DNA of 64,000 nt from Octopus sinensis (taxonomy: Eukaryota), in assembly GCF_006345805.1 (NCBI RefSeq), contig NC_043014.1, forward strand, positions 46,624,001 through 46,688,000, given 5' to 3'. Below, one piece after another: positions 1 to 50,519 of the stretch (the stretch's first letter is position 1; each line of letters starts with the position of its first letter). The notes below the pieces were generated by a model. The model had not been told where the DNA came from. It saw only the letters and a list, made by a program, of their open reading frames with translations, and made no database searches. The translations under genes and the position numbers were made by a program.

Positions 1-547
1 GCTAATATGGCAGTCCAGAAATATAGGACGGATGCTGCCGTTGATTAGCACCAAGAGGCCATCGCCTCTAGCTAGCTATGTGACATATGAACCTGTGTCC
101 ATTATAACCTTTGAATAGGGGAGGTCAGCCACTTCCCCATGCTGGTCAGGCGTTTGCAGACTAGTTTCAGGGTATTTGCTCCTTATCAATTCAGAGCAGC
201 CAAACCAAGCAGGTGTCGCTACTGACAGTCTGTTCGAAGGATTATTTACCTAAATTCAGTGGAATACATCCACTGGTTTTCAAAAATAGAAATATTAAAA
301 TTTCTAAGTCTCTCTAAAGGAAACTACAGCAGCGGTACTGGATATTAATAGTTATCGCCAAGCTAATATGGCAGTCCAGAAATATAGGACGGATGCTGCT
401 GTTGATTAGCTCCAAGAGACCATCGCTTCTAGCTAGCTATGTGACACACTGACCTGTGTCCATTATAACCTTCAAACAGGGGAGGTCAGCCACTTCCCCT
501 TGCTGGTCAAGCATCTACAGACTAGTTTCAGGGTATTTGCCCCTTAT
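1..547. repeat. 361-bp tandem repeat (about 1.5 copies visible, runs off window start)
   Basis: gctaatatggcagtccagaaatatagg starts at 1 and again at 362; similarity continues to about 547 with scattered substitutions. Confidence 0.9.
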
Positions 548-920
548 GGTGAAAAGGTTGTTTGATATAAACTTCACATTTAAGTATCAATTGATGTTAG
601 AAAAGACATCTGACTTGGAAATATAATTACATCGATAATATAAAAAACAAAAAGAAAAAAAGACAACTAAAGAAGAAACTGAAAGAATTGCAGGAACCTC
701 CAAGTTTTTTTTTTTTGCTTTTTTTTGTTGTCATTGTTTTACTTTTGATGTCTTTCATTTGAAATGTTTTTTGCCTCTTAAATGTGTTATTTATTTGTTG
801 CTGTTGTTGCTTTAGAAAATGTTAAGTTTTAAAAAGTAGTCAACCTTCTGTTCTGTCTAATCCCAACTCATCTACATAACCAGAAGACACATACCGATTC
901 CTCTTGGATACTTAGGTTTA

Positions 921-1102
921 TGGAAGCACTCTGTCGGTTACGACGACGAGGGTTCCGGTTGATCCGAATCAACGGAACAGCCTGCTCGTGAAATTAATGT
1001 GTAAGTGGCTGAGCACTCCACAGACACGTGTACCCTTAACGTAGTTCTCGGGGATATTCAGCGTGACACAGAGAGTGACAAGGCCGGCCCTTTGAAATAC
1101 AG
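921..1102 (-). mobile_element. tRNA-derived SINE (family T), 3' part
   Basis: Reverse complement of the 3' half of the full copy at 38381-38760. Confidence 0.85.
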
Positions 1103-1359
1103 GTTTGAAATACTTAGGTTATGACTTCATAAATCGGATCTTTTTTATAGAAAGTTACTGAAGTTCTCTTGAATTGACTTAACCTATTGTTTTGACATAA
1201 TTTTTCGTTAAAAGTTTAATATGGAGAGGCAGTTGAATTACCTTCTTGCAATTAACTAAGAGCACAGATTGGCCACTATTTCTTCTTGGGATACTTGTTG
1301 ACTTTAGTGGCCAGTAACATTTGATAGAGTGATCTGTGGAGGCACAAGTGTCCTATAAA

Positions 1360-1879
1360 AAATAATAAATGCCCCCTTTTAAAGCCTAACCAGGTTCATG
1401 GGCCCGGTTTCTCAGTTTCTATGGCATATGTGTTCCCCAGCTGAACGGGACGCCAGTCCATCTCAGCGTTACTCATTTTTGCCAGCTGAGTCGACTGGAG
1501 TAATGTGAAATGAAGTGTTTTGCTCAAGAACACAACGCATCGCCCGGTCCAGGAATCGAAACCACAATCTTACGATCATGGTGCTGACACCCAAACCACT
1601 AAACCACGTGTCACCACATAAAATAAATGCGCCCTTTTATAAAGCCTAGCCAGGCTCATGGGCCCGGTTTCCCTGTTTCTATGGCGTATGTGTTCCCCAG
1701 CTGGATGGGACGCCAGTCCATTGCAGCATTACTCATTTTTGCCAGCTGAGTCGACTGGAGTAATGTGAAATGAAGTGTTTTGCTCAAGAATACAATGTGT
1801 CACCTGGTCCAGGAATTGAAACCACAATCTTACAATCATGATGCTGACACCCTAACCACTAAGCCACGCACCTCCACAC
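1360..1879 (-). mobile_element. Two head-to-tail tRNA-derived SINE copies (about 260 bp each)
   Basis: On the minus strand each begins with a tRNA-like head (tggaggtgcgtggcttagtggttagg...ggtttcaattcc) and ends in a shared tail; units at about 1360-1618 and 1620-1879. Confidence 0.8.
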
Positions 1880-1884
1880 AAATG

Positions 1885-2710
1885 TCCTACAGGCATAAGT
1901 AACAGTAATGTTTTGTAAATCCTGCTCGCATGTCCATTAACATCCCAGTAACTTTGGGGTCTCCACGGAGATTCCATGGGTGGACATGCTTTTGGATGAT
2001 CACGGATAATGTATCCATTTATATCTTATGGCTTTACTAGGTGAGCAGTGGGTAGTGAGGGTGCCCAGATTTATATTCCCCAGGGGCAGTAAAACTGCTT
2101 CAAGGTTATTTGTGATGAATCAACAAAGAGATGCCAGTCGGATGCTTCACGAGTCTGAAAATCTGAACCAAATTTGTGAAGCGTTCATTGATGTCATTAC
2201 AATACTGCAAGTGGACCAACTACTGTAAAGTGTGTTGCCAAATTTTGCTTTTGATAGAAACTCCCTTGCGCATATTGATTGCTCAAATGACTTCTGTCTT
2301 GAGCAAGAAACACTTCCTTCCCTTTGGACACTGAGAAGTCTCTGACAGAATCCTTCAAATCCTTCAAATTGTTTTCAGCAATATATTCAGTCTCTAAAGT
2401 AGGCTTAGCACCTTTGTTTTATCGTCACTGGGAGCTAGTTCATCATTTAGAGAAAAGGGACAGGCATTCTTTCATAATGTCAAGTCGGTCTTTTTACTGA
2501 GTATGCGTTTGGATAGACAAAGTTTTGTTTGTTCTTTGCTGGAAACCCAGTTCTGTTAATGCTACAAAAATAGCAGCCAATATGAGAATCCTTCTGCTCT
2601 CTCTTTATCAAAGGCCTTGATCAGCTCTCATTGTTCAATCACTCATGTTGTCTACATGATTAGTTGAACAAAATTTTTACATTCATGAGGCATACGGAAT
2701 AAATGGCAAC
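1885..2710 (-). pseudogene. Degraded DNA-transposon transposase relic (probably Chapaev/CMC-like)
   Basis: Minus-strand fragments NLKDLKDSVRDFSVSKGKE, DWHLFVDSSQITLK and GDPKVTGMLMDMRAGFTKHYCYLCL* match in order the motifs LNDLVRDLxLSK, WRLFIDSSKxSLK and GDLKVxxxLxGxQxGxTKxCCFLCxWDSR of a widespread eukaryotic transposase. Stops and frameshifts present. Superfamily assignment is from memory. Confidence 0.7.
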
Positions 2711-2840
2711 AATCTGAGAAAATATTTTGAAAAATATAAAACATTTCACACATAATTAGAAAAAATATAATTAGTCTCATCACAAAAGCTTTATATGTTA
2801 CTGAGAAACTAGAAGCATTTTACTTTAGAAATCACCATTA

Positions 2841-3054
2841 CCCCTTCGGGATTTATACTGGTCATATTGGGCCCAAATATTCTGCTTGTTTCATTTTCGA
2901 ACTGACCAGATCTGGCCTTTCACATCTACCTTACAATGTCAGTTTAAAAATAATCACATCAAACTTCCACAACTGTAAGATAATCTATGATTAATTCAAA
3001 ACAATGTGAATAAATTAGCATTGCATTTGATGGAGTAATCTGAATGCTAAAGGG
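2841..3054. mobile_element. piggyBac-type MITE (degenerate left end)
   Basis: Ends ...gtaatctgaatgctaaaggg|ttaa; internal similarity to the copies at 6809, 10103 and 20621. Confidence 0.7.
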
Positions 3055-3136
3055 TTAAAAATTCTTTCTGTTCTGCTCCAAATTATCTCTGAAGGAATTA
3101 TTTGGTTAATCAGTACAATTTATAAATGGTATTGAG

Positions 3137-3765
3137 CAGTGATTCTCAACCATTTTTCTCCTGTGGACCTCCTCGATTCCGGTTTCACTTAGATGGATCC
3201 TCAACCATTTGATATTTAAAGAATCTTATTGTATTTTTGTAATTAAATATTATTTAATTTTGCTCAGGTTTGTTTCGACCCTTTAGAATTGGAATTTTTG
3301 GAAAGTAAAAATTTCGCATTATGTAGCTTGTTATTCTCTTTAAGTGAACATTTTTCTGGTTGAAATACACAGAAAAATGGCAACACAGCAGTCAAAAAAT
3401 CGTAAAAAATAGGGATTTTCATAGAAAAAAAAAGCACCTTTTTCATGTAAATAATCTTTGGTGTTAACATTGTCTGATTTGAATTTTTTCTTCTACGGGA
3501 GGAAGAACAAGCCTTCTTCTATCATACTCTCAATTTTGGTCAACTTGCACCACAGGGTCTCGGAGAAGATAGTGTTAGTTGAAGGCTACTAAACCTGCCA
3601 TACACAGACAACTTCAGCTTTTATTGAGATTCTACAAAAAAAAAAAATAGTTGTTAAAATGCTTTGTCTTGTAGAAATAAAACCAATTTATTGCAAATAA
3701 ATTTTAATGATAAACTCTGATATGGACCCCTAAGGGTCATGCGGACCCTGGTTTGAGAACCACGG
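3137..3765. mobile_element. hAT-type MITE with nested Helitron-like element
   Basis: Termini cagtgattctcaa / ttgagaaccacgg; 3262-3635 is the reverse complement of the element at 61209-61597. Confidence 0.7.
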
Positions 3766-5409
3766 GTGTAGAACGTTGCATGTTAGTCAGGGATTCAGTA
3801 CAGTATCACACCACTATATAGATGTGTCTCTACAAATTTTGGCTACTTTTTTCTTTTCTTTTTTTTTCTTTTCCCCCTGTAGCTACAATGATTTCGTTTT
3901 TTGCTGTTCATGTATTCAGTTTTGCCTTTTGTTTATAATTTTTTAGTTGTTCTTATTGTAACATGCCGTCAGTATATTTGAGTTTTTGTTCATTTGATGT
4001 TTTTGTTACATTATTTTTTTTTATTGCCCTGCATGGCATGGAGATGTATAATAAGCAAGGTACTTGTCCGTTTGTTAACGTTTTCTTTTTATCCCTTTCG
4101 GGGGGTGACACTCAACTTCTCACACTCTCACTCCTTATTTTTATCCCCTTTTACAGATAGCCTACCTTTTATTCTTTCATACTCTCCTCTCTCTCTCTCT
4201 CTGTAGCTCACTTCACAAAGCGCTTTGAATATTACAATAAATTTTGGTTAAATATTTCAGAGAATGAGGGTGCATAGTTTGTTAGGCTGTGGTGTATATA
4301 TATATAAATTTTTTGTTTTTAGGTTATTTCATTGCCTCAGGTACTTGACTGGATGACTTACCATAGATGGGTTTCCATTCAATATCGTGCACCATTATCT
4401 GGATTCTGACAGGAGGCTTTTTGATGTTTCCTCTTACTGTCAGCCATCCAGATGATTGGTGCTGAGGCAATGATTTGCGGTTGTCACTAGACATTTCACT
4501 AAAGTACAAGTTCTTGTATTTTTCTCTCATTGCATGCTGGTCTAAATTTGCCTCCTCTCTCTCTCCCTCCTTTCTCCCTCTCTCTCCTCTCTCTCTACTT
4601 CATATTCCTCACACAATTCCACGGTTTTCTCTTTTTCTTTACTCCTTCTCTTTGTCTTTGTTCTCTTCAATTTCTCTCTCCTACATAATAGTGCATGTTA
4701 GTTTAAGCTCGCCTCTCTCTCTCTCTTTCTCTCTCCTGTCCATTGTCAACCACTATATAGTCTGTTGCTGTGGCCAGTTTATCAATTTAGACAGGTAATG
4801 GGGAAATTATGAGCAGCTGATGAAGACAGTATGGGAGTGTGGTTTCAAGTATAAACTGTACAAGGGATTGATTGTATAATTGTGCAGCTATGACACCTGG
4901 TAGCAGAACTAAACCCAATAGGTTGGAGTGTTTGCTTAAGGCCCTACCTTGTTACTACTTACTTTTGATTTAAGGGGTTATTTACTTTATATTGAAATGT
5001 CTGCAATGGGCCAAACATTGATTTACTGCTTTTCTGACAATGAGAACGACAAGGGAGTGTCTGTAACTTGTTACAGAACAAACATCACAAGGGACTTAAT
5101 TTGAAGAGCACTGGTAGGCTGATATTTACATACCTTTTCGTTTCATCCTTTTGGGGCCAAGAGGTAGAGGAAAGAGTCTTGGGTAGCTCTTTGCACTTTG
5201 AACTCAAACCCTGCTTCCGGTTGCAAGAGTTGCTAAGAATGATGATGGTAGACTTGGAAAGTTCTTAAGCAAGTGTTTTAGTATCACTTTCATTAGCGGC
5301 ACATGAGCTGACTGGAGAAAATGCAAGTAGGCTTTGCACTTGAATCATCATCACCATCATCATCATTATCTGTCCATCTTCCATGCTGTCATGGGTTGGA
5401 TGATTTGAC

Positions 5410-5852
5410 TGGAGCTGGCAGAAACGTTAGCATGCCGGGCGAAATGCTTAGCAGTATTTCGTCTGCCGTTATGTTCTAAGTTCAAATTTCGCCGAGGTTG
5501 ACTTTGCCTTTCATCCTTTCGGGGTCGATAAATTAAGTACCAGTTACGCACTGGGGTCGATATAATCGACTTAATCCATGTGTCTGTCCTTGTTTGTCCC
5601 CTCTATGTTTAGCCCCTTGTGGGCAACAAAGAAATAAGAAACATTAGCATGCCAGGCAAAATGCTTAGCGGTATTTCGTCTGTCTTTGTGTTCTGAGTTC
5701 AAATTCCGCTGAGGTCGACTTTACCATTCATCCTTTCGGGATTGATTAAATAAGTACCAGTTATGCACTGGTGATCGATGTCATTGACTTAATCCCTTTA
5801 TCTGTCCTTGTTTGTCCCCTCTATGTTTATCCCCCTGTGGGCAATAAAGAAA
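5410..5852 (+). mobile_element. SINE family M, two tandem copies
   Basis: gagctggcagaaacgttagc...gaggtcgactttgcctttcatcctttcggggtcgataaattaagtaccag...ccccttgtgggcaataaagaaat; the same unit occurs more than 15 times in the window. Confidence 0.9.
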
Positions 5853-6808
5853 TATATTATAGATGCTTCAATTACAGCAGCACATATTCAAGTAAAAAAC
5901 GGTTTTAGCACATTGAAGCATGTTAAACATGGGTCATTCTTCAACATAGAGGACCTGGGGTGATTTCTTTTTAAATAAATACATCTCATATACTATCAAA
6001 TATGGTATTTATACACAGGGTAGGATTCAGTACAGTTTCTACCTATCAGGTTCTAATCAGTTCTGGACTGACTAGTGAAGGAGATACTTGTTCAAGGTGC
6101 TGAATAAACATCTGAATAAACATTGCTGGACAGCAAATAGGGACTCGGACATTACATAGAAGATAGTTTTCATTTTTAGCCTCGTATATAGTACGCACTA
6201 GGGATTTTGACCTTTAAATTATTTTGGGGGAAAATGTGAATTATACTCGAGGATTTACAGTACATCTCAGAATGTCCGAGATCTCTGGCACCCACCATGG
6301 GGGGAATCTCACAGCAGACACTACCTCCCCCCTACACATTCCAGTAGACCACCATTTGTATCCTCCCCGCCAGTTCTTGTCTTGCACTTTTAACAATGTG
6401 CGGCAAGAGAGGTAAAACCCACAACGCATCTTAGAATATCCCTGGTGCCACGACAGTTTACTTCTCCAGCTATTTTTTTTTAACCCCTTCACCACACACA
6501 CACACACTCACACTCACACACGCACACGCACACACACACACACACACCACCTCTGATTCTTTTTCTTAACCCTTTCACCCACCAAATCCCCTTTCTCCTT
6601 CCCGTTGCACTGACTCGACCAATTATTGACGCACACACAGATGGTTCTGGAGAGATTTTCATGGTTCGGAGGTCGACATTGTTTTTTGCTTCTTTTGTTT
6701 GTTTGTTTTGGGTTTTTTATGAAATATTTAATTTTTTTTATATATGAATTTTTTTAATTTTAAATTTTATTTCACCTTTTTTTTTTCTATCTTAATCTTA
6801 CCTTTTAA

Positions 6809-7029
6809 CCCTTTGGTGTTCAGATTACTCTATTAAATGTAATACTTTTTCACTCAAATTGTTTTGAATTAATCATGCATTATGTTATATCTTTGAGGTT
6901 TCAATGAAGTGATTATTTATTTTTTAGAATGTCAATGTAGGTTAGGTGTGAGAGGCTAGATATGGCCAGTTTGAATATAAAACATGTAGAATATTTAGGC
7001 CGGATATGGCCAGTTTAAACACTAAAGGG
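6809..7029. mobile_element. piggyBac-type MITE
   Basis: TTAA|ccctttggtgtt ... aacactaaaggg|TTAA: CCC/GGG terminal inverted repeats with TTAA target duplication. Confidence 0.85.
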
Positions 7030-7111
7030 TTAAATCTGATCAGTTTTGTTTGTTACACACACACAAGGCGAAATTATAAATAAAAATAAAGCAAAGTTTA
7101 TCAAAGTTTAT

Positions 7112-7277
7112 AGGTGCAGGAGTGGCTGTGTGGTAAGTAGCTTGTTTACCAACCACATGGTTCCGGGTTCAGTCCCACTGCATGGCACCTTGGGCAAGTG
7201 TGTTCTACTATAGCCTCGGGCCGACCAAAGCCTTGTGAGTGGATTTGGTAGACGGAAACTGAAAGAAGCCCGTCGTA

Positions 7278-7325
<48 letters not shown>

Positions 7326-7530
7326 TGTGTGTATTTGTGTGTGTCCCCCTAGCATTGCTTGACAACCGATGCTGGTGTGTTTATGTCCCCGTTACTTAGC
7401 GGTTCGGCAAAAGAGACCGATAGAATAAGTACTGGGCTTACAAAAGAATAAGTCCCGGGGTCGAGTTGCCCGATTAAAGGCGGTGCTCCAGCATGGCCAC
7501 AGTCAAATGACTGAAACAAGTAAAAGAGTG
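7112..7530 (+). mobile_element. SINE family C (tRNA-like head, CORE-like ccttgggcaagt box, internal AT/GT microsatellite)
   Basis: gcaggagtggctgtgtggtaag...ggttccgggttcagtccc...aatgactgaaacaagtaaaagag. Other copies at about 9165, 27470(-), 33770, 39040(-), 39760, 40380, 42730, 43350(-) and 58420. Confidence 0.9.
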
Positions 7531-7950
7531 TAAAGCTGTTTTTGCATAAAATGTAACTGAATCATTTCGTGATAATAGCACCAATAGCAATCCTTCATTC
7601 TCATTACAGATTCCTGGGTTTTAGTTCTGCATATCAATATTATTGAACCCCTGTCTGTGTGTGTGTGTGTGTGTGTGTATGTGACCTCTTAGTATTGGTT
7701 TATAGTTTTTTAAATTTAGTTTCCAGTTACACATTTGAAGATGGTGGTGGTGGTGGTGGTGGTGGTGGGGGTGGCGGTAGTAGCGGTGATAGTATTAGTA
7801 GTGCTAGAAATAGTTCTTGTTGATATTATAGTTATTTTTATGCCATTAGTCTTATTCTGTGTGCGTACATGCGCGTGTGTGTGTGCATGCACACGCGTGC
7901 AGTAATGCTTCTATTTTTAGAACAATTTTGTCATCAGAAAGCAAAGTATT

Positions 7951-8027
7951 CTAAGTGCTGACATTGATTTTAAGCAACCTGGTGGCACAGCTCGCAACAT
8001 AGGTTACCAAAAAATAGAATATATATA

Positions 8028-8077
<50 letters not shown>

Positions 8078-8161
8078 CATGTGCAAACATATATAAATAT
8101 ATATATATATACATGTGCAAACATATATATATAAATATGTGTGTATATATATATATGTGTG

Positions 8162-8196
<35 letters not shown>

Positions 8197-8197
8197 G

Positions 8198-8228
<31 letters not shown>

Positions 8229-8261
8229 GAATGTGCAAACATATATATAAATATGTGTATA

Positions 8262-8304
<43 letters not shown>

Positions 8305-8375
8305 GTGCAAACACATATATATATATACATGTGCAAACATATATATATATATATATACATGTATGTATGTATATG
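7951..8375. repeat. (AT)n/(ATAC) compound microsatellite
   Basis: Direct inspection; source of several Y/I/H-rich pseudo-ORFs. Confidence 0.95.
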
Positions 8376-9164
8376 TAGCCCTACCCCGCCACACTTAACT
8401 GGATCTCTTGATCATATAACCTTTGGCATTTATTTAATTTTATCCATCTATTCCTTTACCCACCTTCCAGCAGCAGCATCATCATCACCACCACCACCAC
8501 CACCGCTGCCACCACCACCACCACCACCAATAACTAAACATAAGACAAATCCGTAATGAAAGACAAAATTGTTCAGTCGTACAAATTTATTGATTAATAA
8601 AGAGAAGATGAAAATTATTGTTATTATTACTGTGAAAATGAAAAGTGGTGCGAGGGGGGGGAAGGGAATTCGTTGAGCTTATGGGAACATTAAGAAAAAT
8701 ACCTTGTGGTGTTTGTTCTGGCTTTTTTTGTATGTTCCTAGTTCAAATTCTGCTGTGGTCAAGTACTCCTTTTTTTACCCTTTCAGGGTCGATAATCAAG
8801 TACCATTCAAGTACTGGATCGATTCAAGTCGGCAGTTGCTCCCTCCTGTCGTTATATAAGAACGAAAGGAAATGGAGTGTGTATAGGTGTAGATTTGAAG
8901 AACTTTTGCTCCCTTATCTGGGGTAGCTATCAGGATGTCAGCCTCTAACTTGTTCTCCATTCCAGGAGTCTAGAATGTGGAACGTAATGAACCATTTGAC
9001 CCTTTACTCAGAGATTAAGTTATTTAATTTACATGTGAATTATTTACTTTTACCTAATTTGTGTGTGTGTGCATTCAGTGATGGATCAGTTCTATAGCTT
9101 TGTAGCTCTTAGTGAATTCTCTATGAGATTTGACACACTGATCACTAAAGATTGTGATCAGTGG

Positions 9165-9552
9165 TGTAGGAGTGACTGTGTGGTAAGTAGCTTGCTTACC
9201 AACCACATGGTTCCAAGTTCAGTCCCACTGCGTGACACCTTGGGCAAGTGTGTTCTACTATAGCCTTGGGCCGACCAAAGTCTTGTGAGTGGATTTGGTA
9301 GATGGAAACTGAAAGAAACCTGTCGTATATATGTATATATATATATATGTTTGTGTGTCTGTGTTAGTCCCCCCAACATTGCTTGACAACCGATGCTGGT
9401 GTGTTTACGTCCCCGTAACTTAGCGGTTTGGCAAAAGAGACCAATAGAATAAGTACTAGGCTTATAAAGCATAAGTCCTGGGGTCGATTTGCTTGACTCA
9501 AGGTGGTGCTCCAGTATGGCCACAGTCAAATGACTGAAACAAGTAAAAGAGT
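9165..9552 (+). mobile_element. SINE family C copy
   Basis: Colinear with 7112-7530. Confidence 0.9.
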
Positions 9553-10102
9553 GGAGTCTTATCTTAGACCAATGCTTACAAAATATTTCTGAAAAGACAT
9601 ATAACAAATGACATAGTTATTGAATGTTAAATTAATATTTGTAATTTGAAAATAATTTTACTAATTAACGTTCATGTACTAAATTGTTTCTATGAATATC
9701 ATTTTATGAAATTTATTTACAAAAATTACGGAGATGTACTTACATAGCAAGTGACCTGATCTGAGATCGTGTACTGGAACGAAAACAATTGCAGCGTGGA
9801 AGGTGTTTATTTTGTCAGTGAACAGGTCGCGGTCTCAAAGCGACAAAAATATTTTGGCAAATTAAAATTTAAACACCTTCCACGCTGCAATTATTTACAA
9901 AAATATCTTCATTATTTTGTTAAGAATTGTAGAAAGTATTTCTGTTTTCTTGCATAGCTTGGGGTTTTTGTAGTAAATCTTTGCTCTGTAGATTTAGCCC
10001 CATTTACAATTGGTAAGCAATTTTGTGGGTATGTGGGCCCTCCTTCACCATATGAGCTGATGACTTTGCTGTATTTTTACTGCTTCCACTAGAGTCTCTT
10101 AA

Positions 10103-11161
10103 CCCTTTAGCATTTAAACCCGCCATATGTAACCCAAATATTTTACCTGTTCAAACCAGCCAGATCCAGCCTCTCACACCTACCTTACAATGTCGTTCTA
10201 TAAATAAACAATCACATTGTCAAAATCTTGAAGCAATGAGATAATGCATGATTCATCATCATAACCGTTTAACGTCCACCCTCCATGCTAGCATGTTGTG
10301 GGACGGTTCCACAAGAGCTGGCCAACCCAAAGCCTGCACCAGACTTCTGTGACTGTTCTGGCAGGATTTCTACAGCTGGATGCCCTTCCTAACACAAACT
10401 ACTCAGCAGAGTGGACTTGGTGCTTTTTTCATGATACATGCACAGGCGAGGTGAGAAATACTTTTTACATGGCACTAGCACAGGTGAGATCAGTTTTGGC
10501 AAGGTTTTTACACCTGGATGCCCTTCCTAACACCAACCACTTTACAGAGTGGACTGGGTGCTTTTTTCATGGCACAAACACAGGCAAGGTGAGAAGTGCT
10601 TTTTACATGGCACTAGCACAGGTGAGATCAGTTTTGGCAAGGTTTTTACACCTGGATGCCCTTCCTAACACCAACCACTTTACAGAGTGGACTGGGTGCT
10701 TTTTTCATGGCACAAACACAGGCAAGGTGAGAAGTGCTTTTTACATGGCACAAGCACAGGTGAGATCAGTTTTGGCAAGGTTTTTACACCTGGATGCCCT
10801 TCCTAACACCAACCACTTTACAGAGTGGACTGGGTGCTTTTTTCATGGCACAAACACAGGCAAGGTGAGAAGTGCTTTTTACATGGCACAAGCACAGGTG
10901 AGGTCAGTTTTGGCAAGGTTTTTACACCTGGATGCCCTTCCTAACACCAACCACTTTACAGTGTGGACTGGGTGCTTTTAAGTGGCACCTGCACTGACAG
11001 GGTCACCAAGTACTTGCAAGACAAGAAAAAAAAAACTTTCAAAATAATGTGAATAATAAATAGGAATTCCTCCTCCTCCCCATCATCATCGTTTAACGTC
11101 CGTTTTCCATGCTAGCATGGGTTGGAATTGTATTTGATAAAGTAATCTGAATGCTAAAGGG
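10103..11161. mobile_element. piggyBac-type MITE interrupted by an RTE 3'-tail-derived insertion
   Basis: TTAA|ccctttagcattt at 10103 and atgctaaaggg|ttga at 11161, with an insert of about 850 bp between. Confidence 0.8.
10345..10985. repeat. 138-bp tandem array (about 4.5 copies) derived from an RTE 3' UTR
   Basis: ggtgagatcag at 10483, 10621 and 10759, ggtgaggtcag at 10897. The unit contains ctggatgcccttcctaac, the reverse complement of the tail motif at about 30080-30100. Confidence 0.9.
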
Positions 11162-11546
11162 TTGAGATATATGTGTTAGCCTCGAAAACATTGTTGAAAT
11201 AAAGATTTTTTAAAAAATAAACAAAAGACTTAAGATGTCAAATAGATTTCATACCTATTTTTTAAACTACTAATAAAAGTATTACTTAAACATACCGTGA
11301 AATGGTCCTTTTTCATACCGAATTCTACTTGGTGAAATTATTAATTACTTCTTAATTAATTAATTTTACCCTTTGTTATTGTTTTTTAAACTATTTATCA
11401 TGACTGCATCAAATATTTGTAATGCCTTTTTTTTTACTGAAACTCTTGTTTGATAAATGACTTATCTCTCTTTTTTTTCTTTTTCTTTTTCTTTTCTTTT
11501 TCTCACCTTCTCTCTTCTCTCCGTCGTTGCCGTTCCGGACTTCCAG

Positions 11547-11814
11547 CATCGCAGGCCTCTATGTTTCTTTTATTCTGTTGATTGCACGCTTCCTTCGCAT
11601 GGGAACCATCAACATGCATCCGTCAATAATGTACCGTGAACTGCCGTTTGTTGACCGAATCCTCAAGCTGAGCCTCGACATTTACCTTGTGCGTGAGATG
11701 CATGAGTTCCGTCTGGAAGAAGATCTCTATGCCAAACTCATTTTCCTCTATCGATCACCAGAAACACTCATTAAGTGGACCCGACGTCGAATCGAAAGCA
11801 AAAAGGACAACTAG
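11547..11814 (+). CDS. Piezo: Piezo channel terminal coding exon A (inner helix + intracellular C-terminal domain)
   Basis: Acceptor ttccag|C after a long pyrimidine tract; phase 2, as expected for the G|I junction of Piezo last exons. Translation (G)IAGLYVSFILLIARFLRMGTINMHPSIMYRELPFVDRILKLSLDIYLVREMHEFRLEEDLYAKLIFLYRSPETLIKWTRRRIESKKDN* aligns without gaps to the PIEZO1/2 C-terminus (GLYVS...ELPxVDRILKL..DIxLVRE...LEEELYAKLIFLYRSPETMIKWT). Confidence 0.96.
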
Positions 11815-11847
11815 CTTTATTGATATAACTGCTCTTATTATTATTAC

Positions 11848-11884
<37 letters not shown>

Positions 11885-11916
11885 TATTATTATTATTAGT
11901 AGTAGTATTATTATCG

Positions 11917-12135
11917 AGGCGGTAAGCTGGCTGAATTGTTAGCGTACGGGACAGAGCTGTTTAGCGGCATTTCGTCTGCCGTTACGTCCTGAGTTCAAAT
12001 TCCGCCGAGGTCGACTTTGCCTTTCGATCCTTTCAGGGTTGATGAAATAAGTACCAGGGGGGAGTGCTGGGGGTCGATTTAATCGATTTACCCCAGCCCC
12101 TAAATTTCAGGCCTTGTGCCTAAAGCAGAAAGGAT
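11917..12135 (+). mobile_element. SINE family M copy just downstream of Piezo exon A stop
   Basis: gaggcggtaagctggctgaattgttagc...ggtcgactttgcctttc...aaatttcaggccttgtg. Confidence 0.85.
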
Positions 12136-12183
12136 TATTACTATTATTATCATTATTATCTATTATTATTATTATTATCATTA

Positions 12184-12221
<38 letters not shown>

Positions 12222-12489
12222 TATCTCAAGCTTTTGCTTGATTGTGCTTTCTATCTAATCAACCCCTCTTTCTGAGTAATTTGCTTTATATCTGTTTGAT
12301 ATTTATATCATTGCTCTACAGTTGTATGTGCATTATTTATTACATATCTCTGCATAATACAGGATTTTTTAATTTTTTATTTTCATAACCCACAAATATA
12401 TTTTGCTTAAAATGTTCCCCAACTTCTTAATAAAAAAAATATTGTTTACCAATGATGTCCGCAGACCTACTTTCACACATTTCTATAGA

Positions 12490-12520
<31 letters not shown>

Positions 12521-13263
12521 CATGCACACCTGTGTACACCTATGTATCTACACTAATTGCAAACATACACACTCACCTACTGGAATAATCTAATGAGTCT
12601 CTGGAGACACACAAAAGATTATCTAACGACATTTTCTGATATTTTAAAAGATAACGAATTGTAAGGATACAAACAGTACACTGATTAATACACACGCGCA
12701 CACACGCACACACACACACACACACACACCCACACACGCACACACACACACACACACATGTATTCATGTACGTTTTTTTGCAAATATCTGTACGTATTTA
12801 TGGTTTTAAATGTATTAGTAAATCTATGTGTGTGAAGGGGGAGTATGCACGCACACACATGCATGTGCACACAGACAGACAGACACATGCATTACATTCA
12901 TGTGGAAACCTTGTTTCACTTTCACTTTCTCAAAACTGTTACAACGAACAAAAAAGATCCCACAAAAACAAAATCGGAAAAATGAACACCAATACCTCCC
13001 CCAACACCTCCACTTTGTATTTATTTGCTGTTTCTAATTTATATTTCAGTATTATCTGTAGCACAAGTATTAATGGCATTATTAGTATTACTACATGTAG
13101 TAGTAGTAGCAGTAGTAATTGTTGTAAAAAAGTGTTTTGAATTTCTAACGAAAATACGAAAATGGCTCAGGATTTTCATAACAACTTAATTGATTTCCTG
13201 CCCTCAACCTTTGCTCCTCTACCAATACTATCTTACTGGAAAACTGTCTAGTACATTGTTTAC

Positions 13264-13299
<36 letters not shown>

Positions 13300-13854
13300 C
13301 TTTCCATCAAAGAAACCATATTGGTATTACTAATATGGATCTGGCAGAGTGATTAACTTTTCTTCTTTTTTCCCGTTTTTTTATTTTTGGTGGTACGGGG
13401 TGGTGGTACGGGGTGGTGGTGCCTATGATTCATGTAGAGCCTTCACTCCCAGGTTGGTGACTGTAGTGGATGTCCAACCTCAACATCTGCGGGAATGTTT
13501 ACTTGTTCCGTGTTCAAACCCCACAAAATGACAACTTTTGTCTTTCATCCTGCTACGGTCGACCAGCTGTACCCCTTTCTTATAAATTTGTGGCCTTCTG
13601 CCAATCTTAGAAATCATTATTATTATTAAGGTGAAGAACTGGCAGAATCGTTAGCATGCTGGGCAAAATGCTTAGCTGCACTTAATCTGTCCTCACGTTC
13701 TGAGTTCAAATTCCACCGAGGTCGACTTTGCCTTTCATTCTTTCGGGGTTGATAAATTAAGAACCAGTGGAGTACTGGGATCGATGTCATCGACTTAACC
13801 CCTCCCCTAAATTTCAGGCCTTTGTGCCTATAATAGAAAGGATTATTATTATTA

Positions 13855-13895
<41 letters not shown>

Positions 13896-13904
13896 TTCCT
13901 TCTT

Positions 13905-13962
13905 TCTTCAAATTTTCTTCCGTTTCTCATCGAGTGTTTTCCGTACACCTAGGGCAGAGAAG

Positions 13963-13965
<3 letters not shown>
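13905..13965 (-). mobile_element. Very short 5'-truncated R4/Dong 3'-end remnant inside an (ATT)n array
   Basis: gagtgttttccgtacacctagggca resembles the reverse complement of the 3' UTR end at about 52380-52410; (ATT)n lies on both sides. Confidence 0.55.
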
Positions 13966-14015
<50 letters not shown>

Positions 14016-15486
14016 AGAGTTCTCATTTCCAAAAGTTTTGTGTCACAAGTAAATATGAGATATACATATCCAGTAGATAACTCTATTTCTGCCTTTCCTA
14101 TAATTGTAACAATTCAGTTTTATGTGAATTTTCAGGGCAGTGGACTGGCAAAATTTTTTAAGCATCCAGCAAAAAATTCCTTACACTATTTATTCCAGCT
14201 CTTTTACATTCTGAGTTCAGCTCATTTTTACCTTTTTTTTTTTACCTTCTGGGATTGCTGTGAGGCAGGGGTGGTGTCTATAAAATTAACCACCAGTTTA
14301 AGTAATGAAGTTGATATGATTGACTGACTGCTTTCTTTCTCTCTCTCTCTCTCTCTTCAAAATTTCTGCTCCCTGTGCCTATGTTAGAAGTGACTACCTT
14401 TAATTACTGCAGTCAGTATGGCCAGTAAATTGTGTTACCTGCAGTTTCCTCTTGATGGCCCTGAGCTCCCATCATTACTCAGCATTGTAAATAGAAAATT
14501 TATGGTTCAGTTTTCTCCGTAAAAGATGAATATACAATTTGAAAACAAAAAGTTTGTGATCAAAACACATTTTTATTTTTGTCTGTTTTTTTTTATAAAC
14601 CTTTTTCATTTAAACGTGTATTTAAAAAAGAAAAAAAAACAAAACAACAACAACACAAAAAACCCCCAAAAAACAAATACATGTTCCTCAGTATTTGCCG
14701 TTTGTTTCTGTCTGTTTATGTAGCTGTATTACTGAATTACTAACCAGAAAAAACTATATTTAGTGTTCTATGTTTTTGTACTTTCTATCATGTGAACCTT
14801 AAATTCTAAATCTGTGTTTTTATATTGAAACCGTTTCCGAATGTGACAGTGTGTCTTATTATCAGTGTTCAATTGAGTACGTCGTCGTTCATTCTGTTTA
14901 CAAAAAGCATTACATGGCAGTCTAAGTTTTCCACGCAACCCCGTATCACAATCCAAAAGTTGATGTCGTAACGTGACACCTTTTTCTGACAACACTTCAG
15001 GAGATACTGGAATGTCTCTTATTTCAATCTGATCTCTGATTATATTTAGGTAAATCAGTTTATTCCAATACCATCCAAAATACTTGTGTCTATCACATGA
15101 ACTTCCTGACCTTCTCAATCAGTTGCTGTGCTTCTAGTACTATTATTTCATACTAACTTTATTATTATTATAAGAATCAAGCTGACGGAATTATTATTGC
15201 ACCAAACAAAATGATTTGTGTGATTTCTTTGGGTGTTTTATATCACGAGTCAAACACAACCATGATTGAGCTGGCAGAATTGTTAGAAATGTTTAATGGC
15301 ATTTCGTCTGTTCTTGCAGTCTGAGTTCAAATTCCACCAAGGTCTACTTTGCCTTTCATCCTTCTGGGGTCAATATAATAACTACTAGTTTGAGAACTGG
15401 GGTCGATGTAATCAACTTACCCCACTGCTTCTCAAACCTGCTGGCCTTGTGCTAAAATGTGAAACCATTATTATTATTGTAATTAC

Positions 15487-15517
<31 letters not shown>

Positions 15518-15822
15518 GATATCGCACAGTATCGTAAGGTTGTTGATTGGCATGTTTCTGTTGATCAGATCGGCTGGAACCCTTGTCATCATAACCAATG
15601 GAATGCCAGTTTAGTACTGCAAAGACACATATATCAGTGGTTTGCTAGATTCTTTATATTGTCCAATGTTTTCTAAAACAGAATACACTCAAAATGATCA
15701 TCTTTTGATAAACACATGTCTTTCCAATATTTGTTTTGATTGGCTGTTGTTGTTTGTTGTAATAATTTTCAGAATATGGTATGTATTTTCTATTCTAATT
15801 TGGCTGTTGTATTTTAAGTAGT

Positions 15823-15841
15823 TTGTATATGTATATATATA

Positions 15842-15888
<47 letters not shown>

Positions 15889-16274
15889 TACATATACATA
15901 TATATATATATACACATATATACATACATATACATATATATATATACATACACATATATATATACATACACATATATACATACATATACATATATATACA
16001 TACATATACATATATATACATACATATACATATATATACATACATATACATATATATACATACATATACATATATATACATATATATATATATATACATA
16101 CATATACATATATATATACACACATATATATATATACATATATATATACACATATATATATATATACACATATATACATATATATACACATATATATTTA
16201 TGTTTATATATATATGTGTGTGTGTGTGTATATATATATGTGTGTATATATATATATATGTGTGTATGTATATA

Positions 16275-16345
<71 letters not shown>
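15823..16345. repeat. (AT)n/(ATAC)n/(GT)n microsatellite
   Basis: Direct inspection. Confidence 0.95.
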
Positions 16346-17178
16346 CTTAATGAAAGCTTTTGTATATTTGTGTTGTTAGTTAATTCCAGCAGTCAGTTGT
16401 ATAAGGAAAGTCCCTGTTGTGGAAATATCTGAGGTGGTGGCCAGCAGAGGTAGAAGTGTGCACCAGTGTGTATCAATTACAGTCACTTCTTTTGACTAAA
16501 CCATCCAATGGCAGTGTGCCAGCATGGGTCGCAGTCCAATGACCGAAGCAATTAAAATGTGGAAGACACATAGAAATTCACAGAATGGGGGGTGATTGCC
16601 ATAACATAAGCACACGGCAAATTACACAAGCTTATAATCTAATTTTTATTATCAGTTGCAACCATTTACATCTCTGACACTTTGCTATGAGTCTGCTAAT
16701 CTCCCAGTAGTGTTTTTCTAAAAAAAAAAACAGAAAAAAACCCCTGAATTTTATTGGTGTTAACATTCCTTTACTGCTGATTGTTTCCAATGAATGGTTT
16801 TTTCTTTTGTTTTTTAAACATTTATTTCTAATTTTATGGGCTTATCCTGTCTTTTCCTGGTTGTATCGTTGTGTTGTTGTTGTTGTTGTTCCTTCTCTGT
16901 ATTCCCTGATATTCATCACCAATTGTTGTTGTTGTTGGATCGAAAAAAAAAACAAAACAAACAACGACAACAACAAAAACCAGATTAAAAGAAAATAATG
17001 AAAGGAAATTATGGATTACTATAAAAACAGTTTTTACATTTTTTTAAAAAAAGAAAATTTTTATTTTGCTTTAAACTTGCCCTACCAACTTACACACACA
17101 CTCACTCACTCACTCACACACACACACACACACACTCACACACACTCACACATACACACACACACACACACACTCTCA

Positions 17179-17225
<47 letters not shown>

Positions 17226-17512
17226 TCACACACACCAGTCCTAATGTGCAGCACGTGCGTCTACAGCCTCACATTTCATCTTGGCAGCCAGTCATATCAA
17301 TAATAATAATAATAATAATAATAATGATAATAATAATAATAATAATCATGCAGAGGACCCTACTTTCTTACTCCCAAAGCCCTTATATCTGTTCAGTCCC
17401 AAACTATTACTACCAAGAGGTGTTAACAATTGACGATGAGAAGATAACGGAAGTTAGATATTGGCCAGTCTTGTACCTCTTGGTAAACTGTGACATTTCT
17501 GGCATCTTTGTG

Positions 17513-17557
<45 letters not shown>

Positions 17558-17561
<4 letters not shown>

Positions 17562-17591
17562 CTGTGATCAAAAGCAAATGCCTAAACAACA

Positions 17592-17645
<54 letters not shown>

Positions 17646-17880
17646 GGTTCAGCAAAAAAATTGCTTTACCAAATGTGGTAAAGCAAATTTTTTTTGTTGA
17701 ACCCTAATTATATAAAGTAATGTTTAAGTTCACTGTAAATGGTCCTTTTAACATACTGAACACTGCTTGGTAAAATTATTAATTAATTAATTAATTTTAC
17801 CCTTTATTATTATATATATATATATATATTATATATATATATAGCCTAGTGTTTAAGCATTTGCCTTTGATCACAGACAA
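17558..17880. mobile_element. Foldback MITE-like element with about 40-bp TIRs and an internal hairpin
   Basis: ttgtctgtgatcaaaagcaaatgcctaaac (17558) is the inverted repeat of gtttaagcatttgcctttgatcacagacaa (to 17880); inner arms at 17641-17671 and 17676-17709. Confidence 0.8.
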
Positions 17881-18827
17881 ATGATCTATCTTCTGTTCAT
17901 ATGTTTAGATTCCATCAGTATTGAGGTGTTTAATTCTGTGTGTGCGTGTGTGTGTGTAAAAAAGTGTGACTGGAATCTATCTTATTTCCTCCTCTTAATT
18001 TCCTTAATTCTTATCCCACGTTTTTCACTCCTCCTTCTATTTGCTAATCTCACCCTTCAATACTATTACTACTACTATTTCTTGCATGAGTTCTTGCCCT
18101 ATACTTGGGTGGAAAGCGGGGGTGGAGTGGGTCGGGGTGTCTTTCCCTGCATTTGTTTTTTTTTTCTCTTTATATTTTCTTCAGCTAAAATATTAAGGTA
18201 CTTCACCCCCAAGTACCCGTTTACTTTATAACAGTTTTCTCTCTGTCTCACACTTTGGAAATGATTGGAGTAATTCCTGAACAGGTATTTAAAAGAAGAA
18301 GAAACAAAAAAAATGAAATGAAATGAAATATTTGCCTTTAAATGTTTGGATGTATGGGGAACATTTTATGGGTTAACAAGAAATATTTTCTGTGTTTTTT
18401 TTTTTGTTTTTTGTTGTCTACATGATTATTGTATTTTTTTTTTTCCTGAAATTATTTTTTTAAATATTTTTTTCTAAATGTCCAAATGGGGAAATGGCTC
18501 ACCATGACATTCTACAACAAAACATGTTTGTATCCAGTGGCAGATGTTTGTATTCTAATTCTTGGACAACGCATCAAAATTTCCTCATTTAACTATATTC
18601 TATTTAACAGAGTTTAATTATGACAGGCTAACACTCTCTCTTTTCTTCAGTTTAACCCACTAGAAACTACATTCTGTTCCCTTTTTTTTTTTCCATGTTA
18701 AAATACACAAGTCTTTAATGACTTATCCAAGAGGAAGTAGAGACTCTAAAACTGGTACTAAGCATTACAAATCTTGTACTGAACGTAAAGAAAAGTTTAG
18801 CTTCAATGTTAACATTTTAGCCTTTTA

Positions 18828-18968
18828 TAAGGTTGTCCCAAAAGTTCGTAAACACTTGCGAAAATTGAATTTTTACTCACCAAGTACTAACAAAAACAAC
18901 AAAAATTATTCCTCAAAATAAAGACCATTATTTTCCAAGACTTTCTACGAACTTTTGGGACAACCTTA
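18828..18968. mobile_element. Tc1/mariner-type MITE
   Basis: TA|taaggttgtcccaaaagttcgta ... tacgaacttttgggacaacctta|TA; TIR resembles that of the mariner at 46658. Confidence 0.85.
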
Positions 18969-19467
18969 TATTTATTTGTTCAGCTTCCTGAGAGAGGAGT
19001 TGATCTTGGTGTCTAACCACTTCAGAACTCAGATCTCGGAGTTGTTCTCTCTTCTTTCATAGCCGTGTTCCTACCAGCTAAGTGAGGTACGGGACAATTT
19101 ATTTAGTATCTTACCAAATTACTGCTGCTTTTGATGCAATACAAACTCAAATTCTGCAACCAACTGACTGGCATTTTATTCCCTTGGCCATTGGGACTTG
19201 TTTTTTTCTTTTCACAATTAATATTCAATATTTTTGATTTTTTTTTTTTTTGATTGATTCTAGTTTCAGCTTATGAGCTGTGGCCATGCTGGGGCACCGC
19301 CTTTTGTTTAATTTTGTTTAATTTTTTTTTTTTTCGTTTTGTTTTTCAATTTTTATATGCTTGAAATTTGTTTTTAGTTTTTCTTATGCTTGTGTGTGTT
19401 TGTGTGTGTGTTTTCTTTTTGCATTCAGGCAATGTTCTTGTCAACCGTAATCTCATCTCTGTTTCAG

Positions 19468-19720
19468 CATAATTGGCCTGTATGTGTCAATGGTGTTTGT
19501 AATCGGACGCTTTGCTCGTATGTTTGTCAGTGAAGTTTCCTTCCGTATCATGTTTATGGAGCTGCCCCGTGTTGACAACATCTTAAAACTCTGCTTGGAC
19601 ATCTACCTTGTTCGCGAATGCTCTGATTTAGGTCTCGAAGAGGAACTGTTTGCTAAGCTTATATTTTTGTACCGCTCACCAGAAACCATGATCCGATGGA
19701 CTAAACCAAAATATGACTGA
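19468..19720 (+). CDS. Piezo: Piezo channel terminal coding exon B (second inner helix + C-terminal domain)
   Basis: Acceptor ctctgtttcag|C with branch-like ccgtaat; same phase 2 as exon A. Translation (G)IIGLYVSMVFVIGRFARMFVSEVSFRIMFMELPRVDNILKLCLDIYLVRECSDLGLEEELFAKLIFLYRSPETMIRWTKPKYD*. Intact and carries the Piezo signature AKLIFLYRSPET. Confidence 0.96.
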
Positions 19721-20461: not shown

Positions 20462-20620
20462 GGGAAGAATAAGAAGTGTGTTTCTACTTTGATGTAGCTG
20501 TTGTGGTTTAAGTACTGGTCAATGTGGATCAAGTAGAACTATAAACAAAGGCATTCCAGTTGCGTGACCATCCTCCCTCTGACTTAGTATATCCAAGATT
20601 ACTCTAATTAAATATATTAA

Positions 20621-20839
20621 CCCTTTAGTGTTCAGATTATTCTATCAAACATAATGCTTATTGATTCCCATTGATTTGAATTAATTATGCATTGTCTCAT
20701 ATCTTCAAGATCTTGATGTTGTAATTACTTAATGTAGAATAACATTGTAGGGTAGGTGTGAGAGCCTGGATCTGGTCAGTTTGAACATAAAACAGATTAA
20801 ATATTTTGGCCGGATATGACCGGTTTAAATACTAAAGGG
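20621..20839. mobile_element. piggyBac-type MITE
   Basis: TTAA|ccctttagtgttcagatta ... aatactaaaggg|TTAA. Confidence 0.85.
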
Positions 20840-21024
20840 TTAAATATATTCTTCCTTTGATTTAGGAAGGGAGACTGTGAATCGAGGAAAGAAATTGGCT
20901 TCTATTTCTAGAGACTGCAGCATGTATGTAGTTGGTGCTTGACCCTTAAATGTAATGTTGCAGATACAGATTATCCCTTAAGCATTATATCTGTATTTAT
21001 AAAATGATAAATAAAAGGGACAAG

Positions 21025-37298: not shown

Positions 37299-37425
37299 CT
37301 ACTATACAAACAGTTTTCGGCAGGTTGCAAAATGTGATGTGTTCTTGAACATTTACTGTAAATGTTCGAAGTATATTTTAAACGGCCTAGAGGGAGTCGA
37401 AGTTTGGAAAGCGGTTGGAAAGACT
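37299..37425 (+). other. Candidate internal exon of an unidentified gene
   Basis: ttttctcttatattttcatcacacag|C...AAGACT|gtgagt. 127 nt; one open frame YYTNSFRQVAKCDVFLNIYCKCSKYILNGLEGVEVWKAVGKT. No homology recognised. Confidence 0.3.
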
Positions 37426-37469
37426 GTGAGTAACATGTTCCTTTGGTTAATTCTTTTCACCTGCTTTTT

Positions 37470-37476
37470 ATCTATG

Positions 37477-37559
<83 letters not shown>

Positions 37560-37706
37560 GGAGGAAAGACAGACAGATAGATAAATAGATAGACAGGTAG
37601 ATTGATTGATAGATAGATAGACAGGTAGATTGATTGATAGACAGGTAGATTGATAGATAGACAGACAGACAGATATATATATATAGATAGACAGACAGAC
37701 AGATAT

Positions 37707-37798
<92 letters not shown>

Positions 37799-37876
37799 GC
37801 AGGTAGATTGATTGATAGATAAACAGGTAGATTGAGAGATAGACAGACAGACAGATATATAGACAGAGAGACAGAC

Positions 37877-37955
<79 letters not shown>

Positions 37956-37972
37956 CAGATAGACAGACAGAC

Positions 37973-38051
<79 letters not shown>

Positions 38052-50470: not shown

Positions 50471-50518
<48 letters not shown>

Positions 50519-50519
<1 letters not shown>

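Follow-up and report, generated by a model that had tools for sequence, protein, structure and literature searches.

In the stretch of Octopus sinensis DNA analysed here (64,000 nucleotides (nt) of contig NC_043014.1, assembly GCF_006345805.1, positions 46,624,001 to 46,688,000 of the forward strand; hereafter the window), one Piezo gene probably carries two tandem alternative last coding exons, A and B, and so gives rise to two channels that differ only in the lining of the pore and its cytoplasmic end. The exons lie on one strand, enter from an identical acceptor phase (AG, one base, then a codon) and each have their own stop. A sequence-only reading of the window had called A and B isoforms, and orthologues justify the term, as in both oyster and mussel a single upstream exon is joined to one copy or the other. 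The features concerned are the following, with positions counted from the first letter of the window and residues numbered as in mouse Piezo1.

11507 to 11546, + strand: 3' end of the intron before exon A, with a pyrimidine-rich tract (pyrimidine fraction 0.70 at -23 to -4) and acceptor AG (…cttccag)
11547 to 11814, + strand: exon A, the A-type last coding exon of Piezo; inner pore helix plus C-terminal domain, with a PF12166 match
11569 to 11640, + strand: codons 8-31 of exon A (mouse 2473-2496), where A and B diverge most strongly; L/L at the 2475/2476 gate, G-T at 2484/2485, R at 2495
11698 to 11712, + strand: codons 51-55 of exon A (MHEFR; mouse 2516-2520), a second block in which 5 of 5 positions differ from B; M2516 is invariant in A-type exons
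11815 to 19467, + strand: spacer of 7653 nt from the exon A stop to exon B; intron for the B isoform, 3' flank or 3' untranslated region (UTR) for the A isoform
12429 to 12434, + strand: AATAAA, candidate polyadenylation signal for an A-only mRNA, 615 nt past the exon A stop; a hexamer match only
19428 to 19467, + strand: 3' end of the intron before exon B, with a pyrimidine-rich tract (pyrimidine fraction 0.75) and acceptor AG (…ctgtttcag)
19468 to 19720, + strand: exon B, the canonical-type last coding exon of Piezo, with a PF12166 match
19490 to 19561, + strand: codons 8-31 of exon B; F/V gate, F-V at 2484/2485, E2487, M2495
20607 to 21015, + strand: first candidate polyadenylation hexamers past exon B (ATTAAA at 20607 and 20796, AATAAA at 21010); hexamer matches only

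Exon A opens with the single base that closes a split Gly codon and continues for 88 codons (88 amino acids) to a TAG stop at 11812-11814. It reads cag/C ATC GCA GGC ... AAC TAG, which translates as IAGLYVSFILLIARFLRMGTINMHPSIMYRELP...ESKKDN before the stop; all 88 codons give IAGLYVSFILLIARFLRMGTINMHPSIMYRELPFVDRILKLSLDIYLVREMHEFRLEEDLYAKLIFLYRSPETLIKWTRRRIESKKDN. Exon B likewise has a single base, then 83 codons (83 amino acids) and a TGA stop at 19718-19720, reading cag/C ATA ATT GGC ... GAC TGA, that is IIGLYVSMVFVIGRFARMFVSEVSFRIMFMELP...KPKYD before the stop, with IIGLYVSMVFVIGRFARMFVSEVSFRIMFMELPRVDNILKLCLDIYLVRECSDLGLEEELFAKLIFLYRSPETMIRWTKPKYD as the translation of all 83 codons. The tails of the two versions diverge after W-T-R/K, and their 3' flanks differ too. 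The span singled out by the sequence-only reading, 11547-11640, runs from the first base of exon A to codon 31, and the 24-residue strings that it quoted for A and B were located exactly at 11569-11640 and 19490-19561. The spacer between the copies is rich in microsatellites and interspersed repeats. No further Piezo-like exon was found between A and B or elsewhere in the window; probing positions 1-11546 with the C-terminal region of mouse Piezo1 and with the cap domains of oyster, mussel, Mya, Aplysia and Lymnaea returned no upstream Piezo exon, and a motif-plus-donor scan of the window did not find the end of the penultimate exon. The window therefore contains only the 3' end of the gene, and the penultimate exon must lie outside it, more than 11.5 kb upstream of exon A.

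The identity of the two exons was established at the level of profile and of structure-bearing sequence. Both match Pfam PF12166 (the Piezo_cap model) at profile positions 219-298 of 298, with 120.6 bits for exon A and 140.1 bits for exon B against a curated cut-off of 26.9 bits. In phmmer comparisons with PDB chains, both align gap-free to mouse Piezo1 (5z10/6b3r, 2547 amino acids) with position 1 at residue 2466, exon A covering residues 2466-2546 (E-value 1.7e-26) and exon B residues 2466-2545 (E-value 1e-30). Ungapped alignments were also obtained to human Piezo1, Piezo2, C. elegans PEZO-1 and the 2551-residue chain 9w7x, which we take to be Drosophila Piezo. Identities of 63-69% without insertions or deletions exclude an offset in the residue numbering; the mapping on which the earlier reading relied (position 1 = 2466) is thus correct, and no alignment offset was found. 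Landmarks present in both exons include R2482, I-M-F/Y at 2492-2494, E2496-L-P and Y-R-S-P-E at 2533-2537. Judged by these alignments, both exons encode the inner pore helix of Piezo in full, together with its C-terminal domain on the cytoplasmic side.

In mouse Piezo1, L2475 and V2476 form the hydrophobic inactivation gate, and M2493/F2494 and P2536/E2537 form constrictions (PMC6349400). The inner helix governs the rate of inactivation and its voltage dependence (PMC6349400; PMC5938756). Further, E2495 and E2496 influence Ca2+ selectivity, conductance and block (PMC7796548), and neutralising E2487 or E2495/6 lowers cation selectivity (PMC7815867). The roles that the earlier reading had assigned to these mouse residues are borne out in PMC6349400, PMC7796548 and PMC7815867.

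Exons A and B differ at 34 of 83 positions. The differences concentrate at exon positions 8-30 (16 of 23, against 12 of 48 at positions 31-78; hypergeometric p = 2e-4), and this clustering keeps a p of 0.004 in a permutation test that allows any 23-residue window. The sequence-only reading had described just this concentration together with a conserved distal C-terminal domain; the first part stands, but the second fails as a uniform claim because positions 51-55 (2516-2520) read MHEFR in A and CSDLG in B, 5 of 5 being different. Its individual residue assignments agree with a per-residue table: the 2475/2476 gate is L/L in A and F/V in B, residue 2487 is N in A and E in B, 2494 is Y in A and F in B, and 2495 is R in A and M in B, with R2482, M2493, E2496 and P2536/E2537 retained in both exons. 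It had also predicted A to be the more atypical pore, with less negative charge. The former is supported by the lower PF12166 score of exon A (120.6 against 140.1), by its fewer matches to mouse at positions 8-30 (6 of 23, compared with 12 of 23 for B) and by its place in a derived clade, discussed below. The latter holds only slightly: residues 2479-2502 carry a net +2 in A and +1 in B, compared with -1 in mouse, and A is only one charge less acidic than B because B carries extra arginines at 2491 and 2499.

Which of these differences matter can be gauged from relatives. These were collected by homologue searches, followed by a profile search of 1.84 billion representatives and by cluster look-ups, and the DNA around several of them was fetched; homologue searches with short queries gave only open reading frame (ORF) fragments of at most 154 amino acids. 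A-like exons were found in other animals at 64-84% identity and with a shared signature, and B-like exons were found too. When 15 distinct exons of the A type are set against 168 further Piezo last exons, a sample biased by what the searches returned, the A type shows the following marks: F2473-I-L-L-I2477, L2481, S/G2484-T2485, V-R-E-M2516 and Y2526. Window exon A has them all, and I2474, L2476, T2485, M2516 and Y2526 are invariant among A-type exons. Position 2474 is I in the A type and V in 151 of the 168 others. At 2476, the pore-facing gate position, the A type has L, whereas 128 of 168 others have V and 33, fly Piezo among them, have L. Where the A type carries S or G at 2484 and T at 2485, the others are hydrophobic, mostly F-F. 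Residue 2495 is R in 10 of 15 A-type exons and acidic in 115 of 168 others; basic residues there are rare outside the A type, with five cases listed, one of which is an A-like exon that fell outside the A-type filter.

Most exons of the A type have also lost residues that Piezos otherwise nearly always keep. M2493 is retained in 2 of 15 A-type exons compared with 148 of 168 others, and P2536 in 3 of 15 compared with 165 of 168; the two represent one residue from each of the two cytoplasmic constrictions in Piezo1 structures. Window exon A retains both, while its closest A relative has Q and S. These comparisons change the list of residues on which attention should rest. Position 2487, stressed by the earlier reading as a determinant, is no conserved one: Gly stands there in most Piezos, whether A-type (12 of 15) or not (106 of 168). 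Similarly, Y2494 in A and F2475 and M2495 in B, which it had treated as distinguishing the two, are absent from exons of the same type in bivalves and heterobranch gastropods, F2475 recurring in Nucella. Residues 2487 and 2494 and the F2475 of B are thus lineage noise. Conversely, the type-defining I2474, L2476, L2481, S/G2484, T2485, M2516 and Y2526 had been missed, as had the status of R2495 as a shared mark.

Direct evidence that one gene uses both endings comes from bivalves. The Crassostrea gigas RefSeq set contains XP_011438487.1 (X1) with an A-type end and XP_011438488.1 (X2) with a B-type end, their upstream sequence being identical. For Mytilus edulis, CAG2248323/4 end in A and CAG2248322 in B, and all three models lie on one contig. 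At the level of transcripts, an oyster Logan contig (L012, from SRR8489867) spans many Piezo exons without introns and reads on into the A exon, and two contigs from other runs (L013 and L014) join the same upstream exon to the B exon. L012 and L013/L014 are 98-99% identical up to GGATATGG and then diverge at the last base of the split Gly codon. Past the A stop, L012 (3806-5030) contains a 642-nt spacer, the B acceptor (ttgtag/C) and the complete B exon, so at least some oyster A mRNAs carry the B exon as 3' UTR. As L012 reads through the spacer into B, the choice in oyster looks like one between a proximal and a distal 3' splice site, which favours acceptor choice and a common distal end over separate 3' ends.

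The same arrangement recurs beyond bivalve annotation. An upstream and a downstream copy occur on one strand in six other genomic loci, two from gastropods and four from further assemblies:

L001, bivalve-like assembly: spacer 5.6 kb; upstream copy in the A clade
L006, Aplysia californica: spacer 4.3 kb; upstream copy in the A clade
L007, Lymnaea stagnalis: spacer 3.9 kb; upstream copy in the A clade
L008, caenogastropod-like assembly: spacer 2.6 kb; upstream copy in the A clade
L010, ENA assembly, 3494-3757 and 10064-10315: spacer 6.3 kb; upstream copy divergent, outside the A clade, with K at 2495
L011, ENA assembly, 7616-7873 and 9977-10228: spacer 2.1 kb; upstream copy A-like

Taking the window, these six loci and the oyster contig together, the distance between A and B ranges from 0.6 to 7.7 kb. 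The layout of AG, one base and codon is common to all copies except the downstream copies of two heterobranchs. In Aplysia and Lymnaea the annotated protein has an A-type end, and the Lymnaea gene model with this end carries PF15917, PF23188, PF24874 and PF12166. The heterobranch downstream copies themselves (21020-21356 of L006 in Aplysia, 60821-61082 of L007 in Lymnaea) are 43-47% identical to the window exons and have a 1-2 residue insertion in the 2483-2491 linker; their frame is intact and they are fast-evolving, and they apparently use an acceptor 16 nt further upstream that adds a conserved (P/W)VRGG. The upstream copy of L011 is intermediate, with V-V at 2476/2477 and S at 2495. Given the pairs in L010 and L011, the duplication could be older than Mollusca.

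Several protein models show the two copies in a row. In Mya arenaria WAR12852.1 (P0187), residues ~1221-1396 contain A and then B fused, with two inner helices in succession, and this fusion is very likely an annotation error. Two successive inner-helix copies also occur in the rotifer Didymodactylos carnosus (CAF1285104.1) and in the stick insect Timema genevievae (CAD7588074.1). The first Timema copy is shorter and ends in ...VDRILQ, which would suggest an internal mutually exclusive exon, and alternative pore exons may, on the strength of such models, have arisen more than once. Tick Piezo was considered as a further case and rejected, all tick isoforms having one common C-terminus.

Both window exons are under strong purifying selection. 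Against their closest relatives, exon A has a dN (nonsynonymous divergence) of 0.077 with a saturated dS (synonymous divergence) above 4 (dN/dS ~0.02), and exon B a dN of 0.097 with a saturated dS of 2.2 (dN/dS ~0.04). Low dN at saturated dS means that both copies have been kept by selection in the lineage of the window. Outside the exons, the window and the loci of its nearest relatives no longer align; no conserved neighbours or intron elements are shared by the window and related loci, the two exons alone being conserved. The use of both exons in the window's own species, accordingly, would follow from this conservation.

The history of the pair was traced by neighbour joining on 29 sequences of the last exon. 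The nine A-type exons group together with 99% bootstrap support, a value that falls to 75% after five more sequences are added, and the clade contains bivalves (89%), heterobranchs (99%) and the window with its relative (99%). The L011 upstream copy is attached to it weakly (48%). B-type exons in the same tree are interspersed with canonical Piezo exons from echinoderm, hemichordate, amphioxus and vertebrates. The exons of the window fall outside the groups of gastropods and bivalves, a placement that, like the long and repeat-rich spacer, would suit a cephalopod. The tree implies that the duplication is older than the split of these mollusc classes and that A is the derived copy. On this topology, the A pore and its own invariant residues would have persisted from a time before the lineages of bivalves, gastropods and the window parted.

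Some observations weigh against two differing channels from one gene. The penultimate exon lies outside the window, so that the common upstream exon rests on orthologues. The closest relatives of the two exons (84% and 86% identical) are known as genomic fragments only, and no A-type exon was found within 10 kb upstream of the closest B-type relative (locus L002), possibly just reflecting a longer spacer. The tree rests on ~80 residues and on neighbour joining. Further, the 2483-2491 linker varies across all Piezos, which means that part of the difference between A and B is ordinary drift. The gate changes, which the earlier reading had offered as a basis for different kinetics, are a weak one: they are conservative hydrophobic swaps, and L2475F in mouse Piezo1, with a tau of 10.2 ms, is grouped by the authors among substitutions whose inactivation equals that of wild type or is faster (PMC6349400). 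The text of that paper does not say how V2476L acts in mouse. Finally, no electrophysiology on any mollusc Piezo isoform was found in the literature searched.

On a rival reading, both exons would be used while their pore differences were neutral, the alternative end chiefly serving regulation, through 3' UTRs, mRNA stability or localisation, trafficking or the binding of partners by the tail. The gate exchanges one hydrophobic residue for another with the mouse counterpart L2475F behaving like wild type, the linker is variable family-wide, and the tails after W-T-R/K and the 3' flanks differ between versions. In addition, the oyster A mRNA contig, with the whole B exon in its 3' UTR, means that the mRNAs differ greatly beyond the coding change. 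However, drift would not preserve I2474, L2476 and T2485 without exception across three mollusc lineages, nor a basic residue at 2495 in most A-type exons; nor does neutrality sit well with the loss across the A type of M2493 (kept in 2 of 15) and P2536 (3 of 15), both near-universal otherwise, or with the altered selectivity, conductance and block of mouse E2495/E2496 mutants. A neutral pore difference with a chiefly regulatory role for the alternative end is therefore unlikely.

It is very improbable that one copy, of which the atypical exon A would be the likelier, is a silent relic of duplication that is never spliced in. The long (7.65 kb), repeat-filled spacer would suit such a relic, but both copies have intact frames, correct phase and good acceptors, dN/dS values of ~0.02 (A) and ~0.04 (B) at saturated synonymous sites are unlike those of a relic, and A-type ends are expressed in oyster and close annotated proteins of Aplysia, Lymnaea and Mytilus. 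That two distinct Piezo genes, or a gene and a partial duplicate of it, supply the exons is scarcely credible: the upstream exons do lie outside the window, but there is no other Piezo exon before or between the copies in 19 kb, the oyster and mussel endings share identical upstream protein sequence and one contig, and the close pairing (0.6 to 7.7 kb) recurs in six other genomic loci and the oyster contig. The candidate explanations of a pseudo-exon, two separate genes and chance similarity were rejected on these same grounds.

One gene with two alternative pore ends remains the preferred reading, and it would operate as follows. The penultimate exon would be joined to one of two acceptors, the proximal one at 11547 (exon A) or the distal one at 19468 (exon B), and with a stop of its own in each version any one mRNA would encode only A or only B. 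The blades, anchor, outer helix and cap would stay constant while the pore lining is exchanged, B providing the canonical pore and A a derived pore type. As far as residues can tell, the A and B channels would differ in permeation and/or inactivation, for which the main candidate causes are the polar S/G-T in place of F-F at 2484/2485, a basic in place of an acidic or neutral residue at 2495, and L in place of V at 2476. R2495 and the polar pair at 2484/2485 would be expected to act above all on ion selectivity or conductance, and L2476 to make a smaller difference in inactivation.

A bolder form of this proposal falls just short of probable. It holds that for over half a billion years molluscs, perhaps along with other lophotrochozoans, have drawn two biophysically different channels from one Piezo gene by swapping only the pore helix and cytoplasmic neck. 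With a basic residue at 2495, a lateral-portal position, polar residues at 2484/2485 and, in most species, neither M2493 nor P2536, the A pore would have clearly different Ca2+ permeability or cation selectivity and inactivation. If true, molluscs would have at the level of splicing what vertebrates have in the gene pair Piezo1/Piezo2, and mixed trimers would widen the range further.

No paper on an alternative last exon or an inner-helix exon in Piezo was found in the literature searched. The A/B event is nevertheless present, unremarked, in RefSeq and ENA bivalve models: C. gigas XP_011438487.1/XP_011438488.1 and M. edulis CAG2248322-4 are orthologous A/B isoforms that stand as database entries without description, Piezo splicing itself being already established. 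Analogous solutions exist in unrelated channels. The alternative 3' ends of Drosophila Shaker include S6 and set C-type inactivation, and exons 12a/12b of Lymnaea Cav3 change Na+/Ca2+ permeability. Both resemble the mollusc Piezo case in that one gene supplies two versions of a pore segment with differing gating or selectivity, but the families and folds are unrelated and the likeness is an analogy only.

Within the Piezo family, the nearest precedents are mammalian. Piezo1.1, in which exon 30 is skipped, has higher conductance and pressure sensitivity and has been called the only known Piezo1 variant (PMC12934605), while exon 33 of Piezo2 alters permeability and exon 35 sensitivity or kinetics (PMC12934605; PMC12490864). 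Piezo1.1 and the Piezo2 cassette exons (10, 22, 33, 35 and others) share with the mollusc event the principle that splicing alters channel behaviour. They are, however, cassettes in intracellular loops (lateral plug, THU7-8 loop) that are included or skipped, whereas in molluscs two homologous pore exons replace each other; the described mammalian variants leave the inner helix untouched. Chimeras of mouse Piezo1 and Drosophila Piezo have shown that the C-terminal region carries conductance and ruthenium-red block (Coste et al. 2015, PMC4445471), and the mollusc gene would swap naturally within that region. The chimeras exchanged ~570 residues (1974-2547), including the anchor, outer helix and cap, compared with the last ~82 residues in the mollusc swap. 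Fly Piezo has L-L at 2475/2476 like the A type, yet its exon is not an A-type exon. C. elegans pezo-1 is one gene with many isoforms, and the three solved isoforms differ in the extent of the N-terminal blade (PMC12951647); the likeness lies in the number of isoforms drawn from one invertebrate Piezo gene, the difference in that the pore is not exchanged. The window exons align with PEZO-1 isoform k and with full-length PEZO-1 at identical C-terminal residues. An Octopus vulgaris transcriptome study counts 'two genes' of the PIEZO family, and these could be the A and B isoforms.

The Piezo pore has so far been mapped by artificial mutants and chimeras, and here a natural, long-conserved swap of the last ~82 residues would sit on an otherwise identical channel, covering sites 2476, 2493, 2495 and 2536 highlighted by mutagenesis. 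It offers a testable system for the role of the inner helix and C-terminal neck in selectivity, conductance and inactivation, and for the need for the cytoplasmic constrictions. It also bears on the means by which invertebrates with one main Piezo gene diversify their sensing of touch and stretch, and it flags both annotation errors (fused A+B models) and a missed class of isoforms in mollusc genomes.

The rest of the window is AT-rich animal DNA full of microsatellites and retroelement fragments. Within the intron, ~570 nt before exon A, positions 10355-10979 form a tandem array of a 138-bp unit (4.5 copies, 95% identity) that yields a spurious ORF of 227 amino acids at 10298-10981. Right after the exon A stop, at 11820-12230, (TTA)n microsatellites flank a GC-richer insert of ~200 bp (~11900-12130) that resembles an interspersed repeat; ARAGORN found no tRNA in this repeat. 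Very long dinucleotide or low-complexity arrays, including (TA)260 and (AC)72, occupy 15826-16344, 17092-17235, 25976-26732 and 34600-38100. Those between 34 and 38 kb comprise kilobase-scale CA/TA-rich tracts with strong GC skew, and such arrays yield many false ORFs. A GC-rich island at 28000-32000 (0.46-0.48, compared with ~0.35 around it) has Arg/Pro-rich ORFs on both strands without a Pfam match and may be a CpG-type island or a repeat. Fragments of retrotransposons lacking long terminal repeats (non-LTR), with weak RVT_1 and zf-RVT Pfam matches, lie at 40505-41209 (- strand), 49565-52277 (+ strand), 55197-55661 (- strand) and 58055-58453 (+ strand). For the ORF at 51150-52274, shrimp, hydrozoan, starfish, coral and killifish supply relatives at 54-68% identity, and there is one match at 99%.

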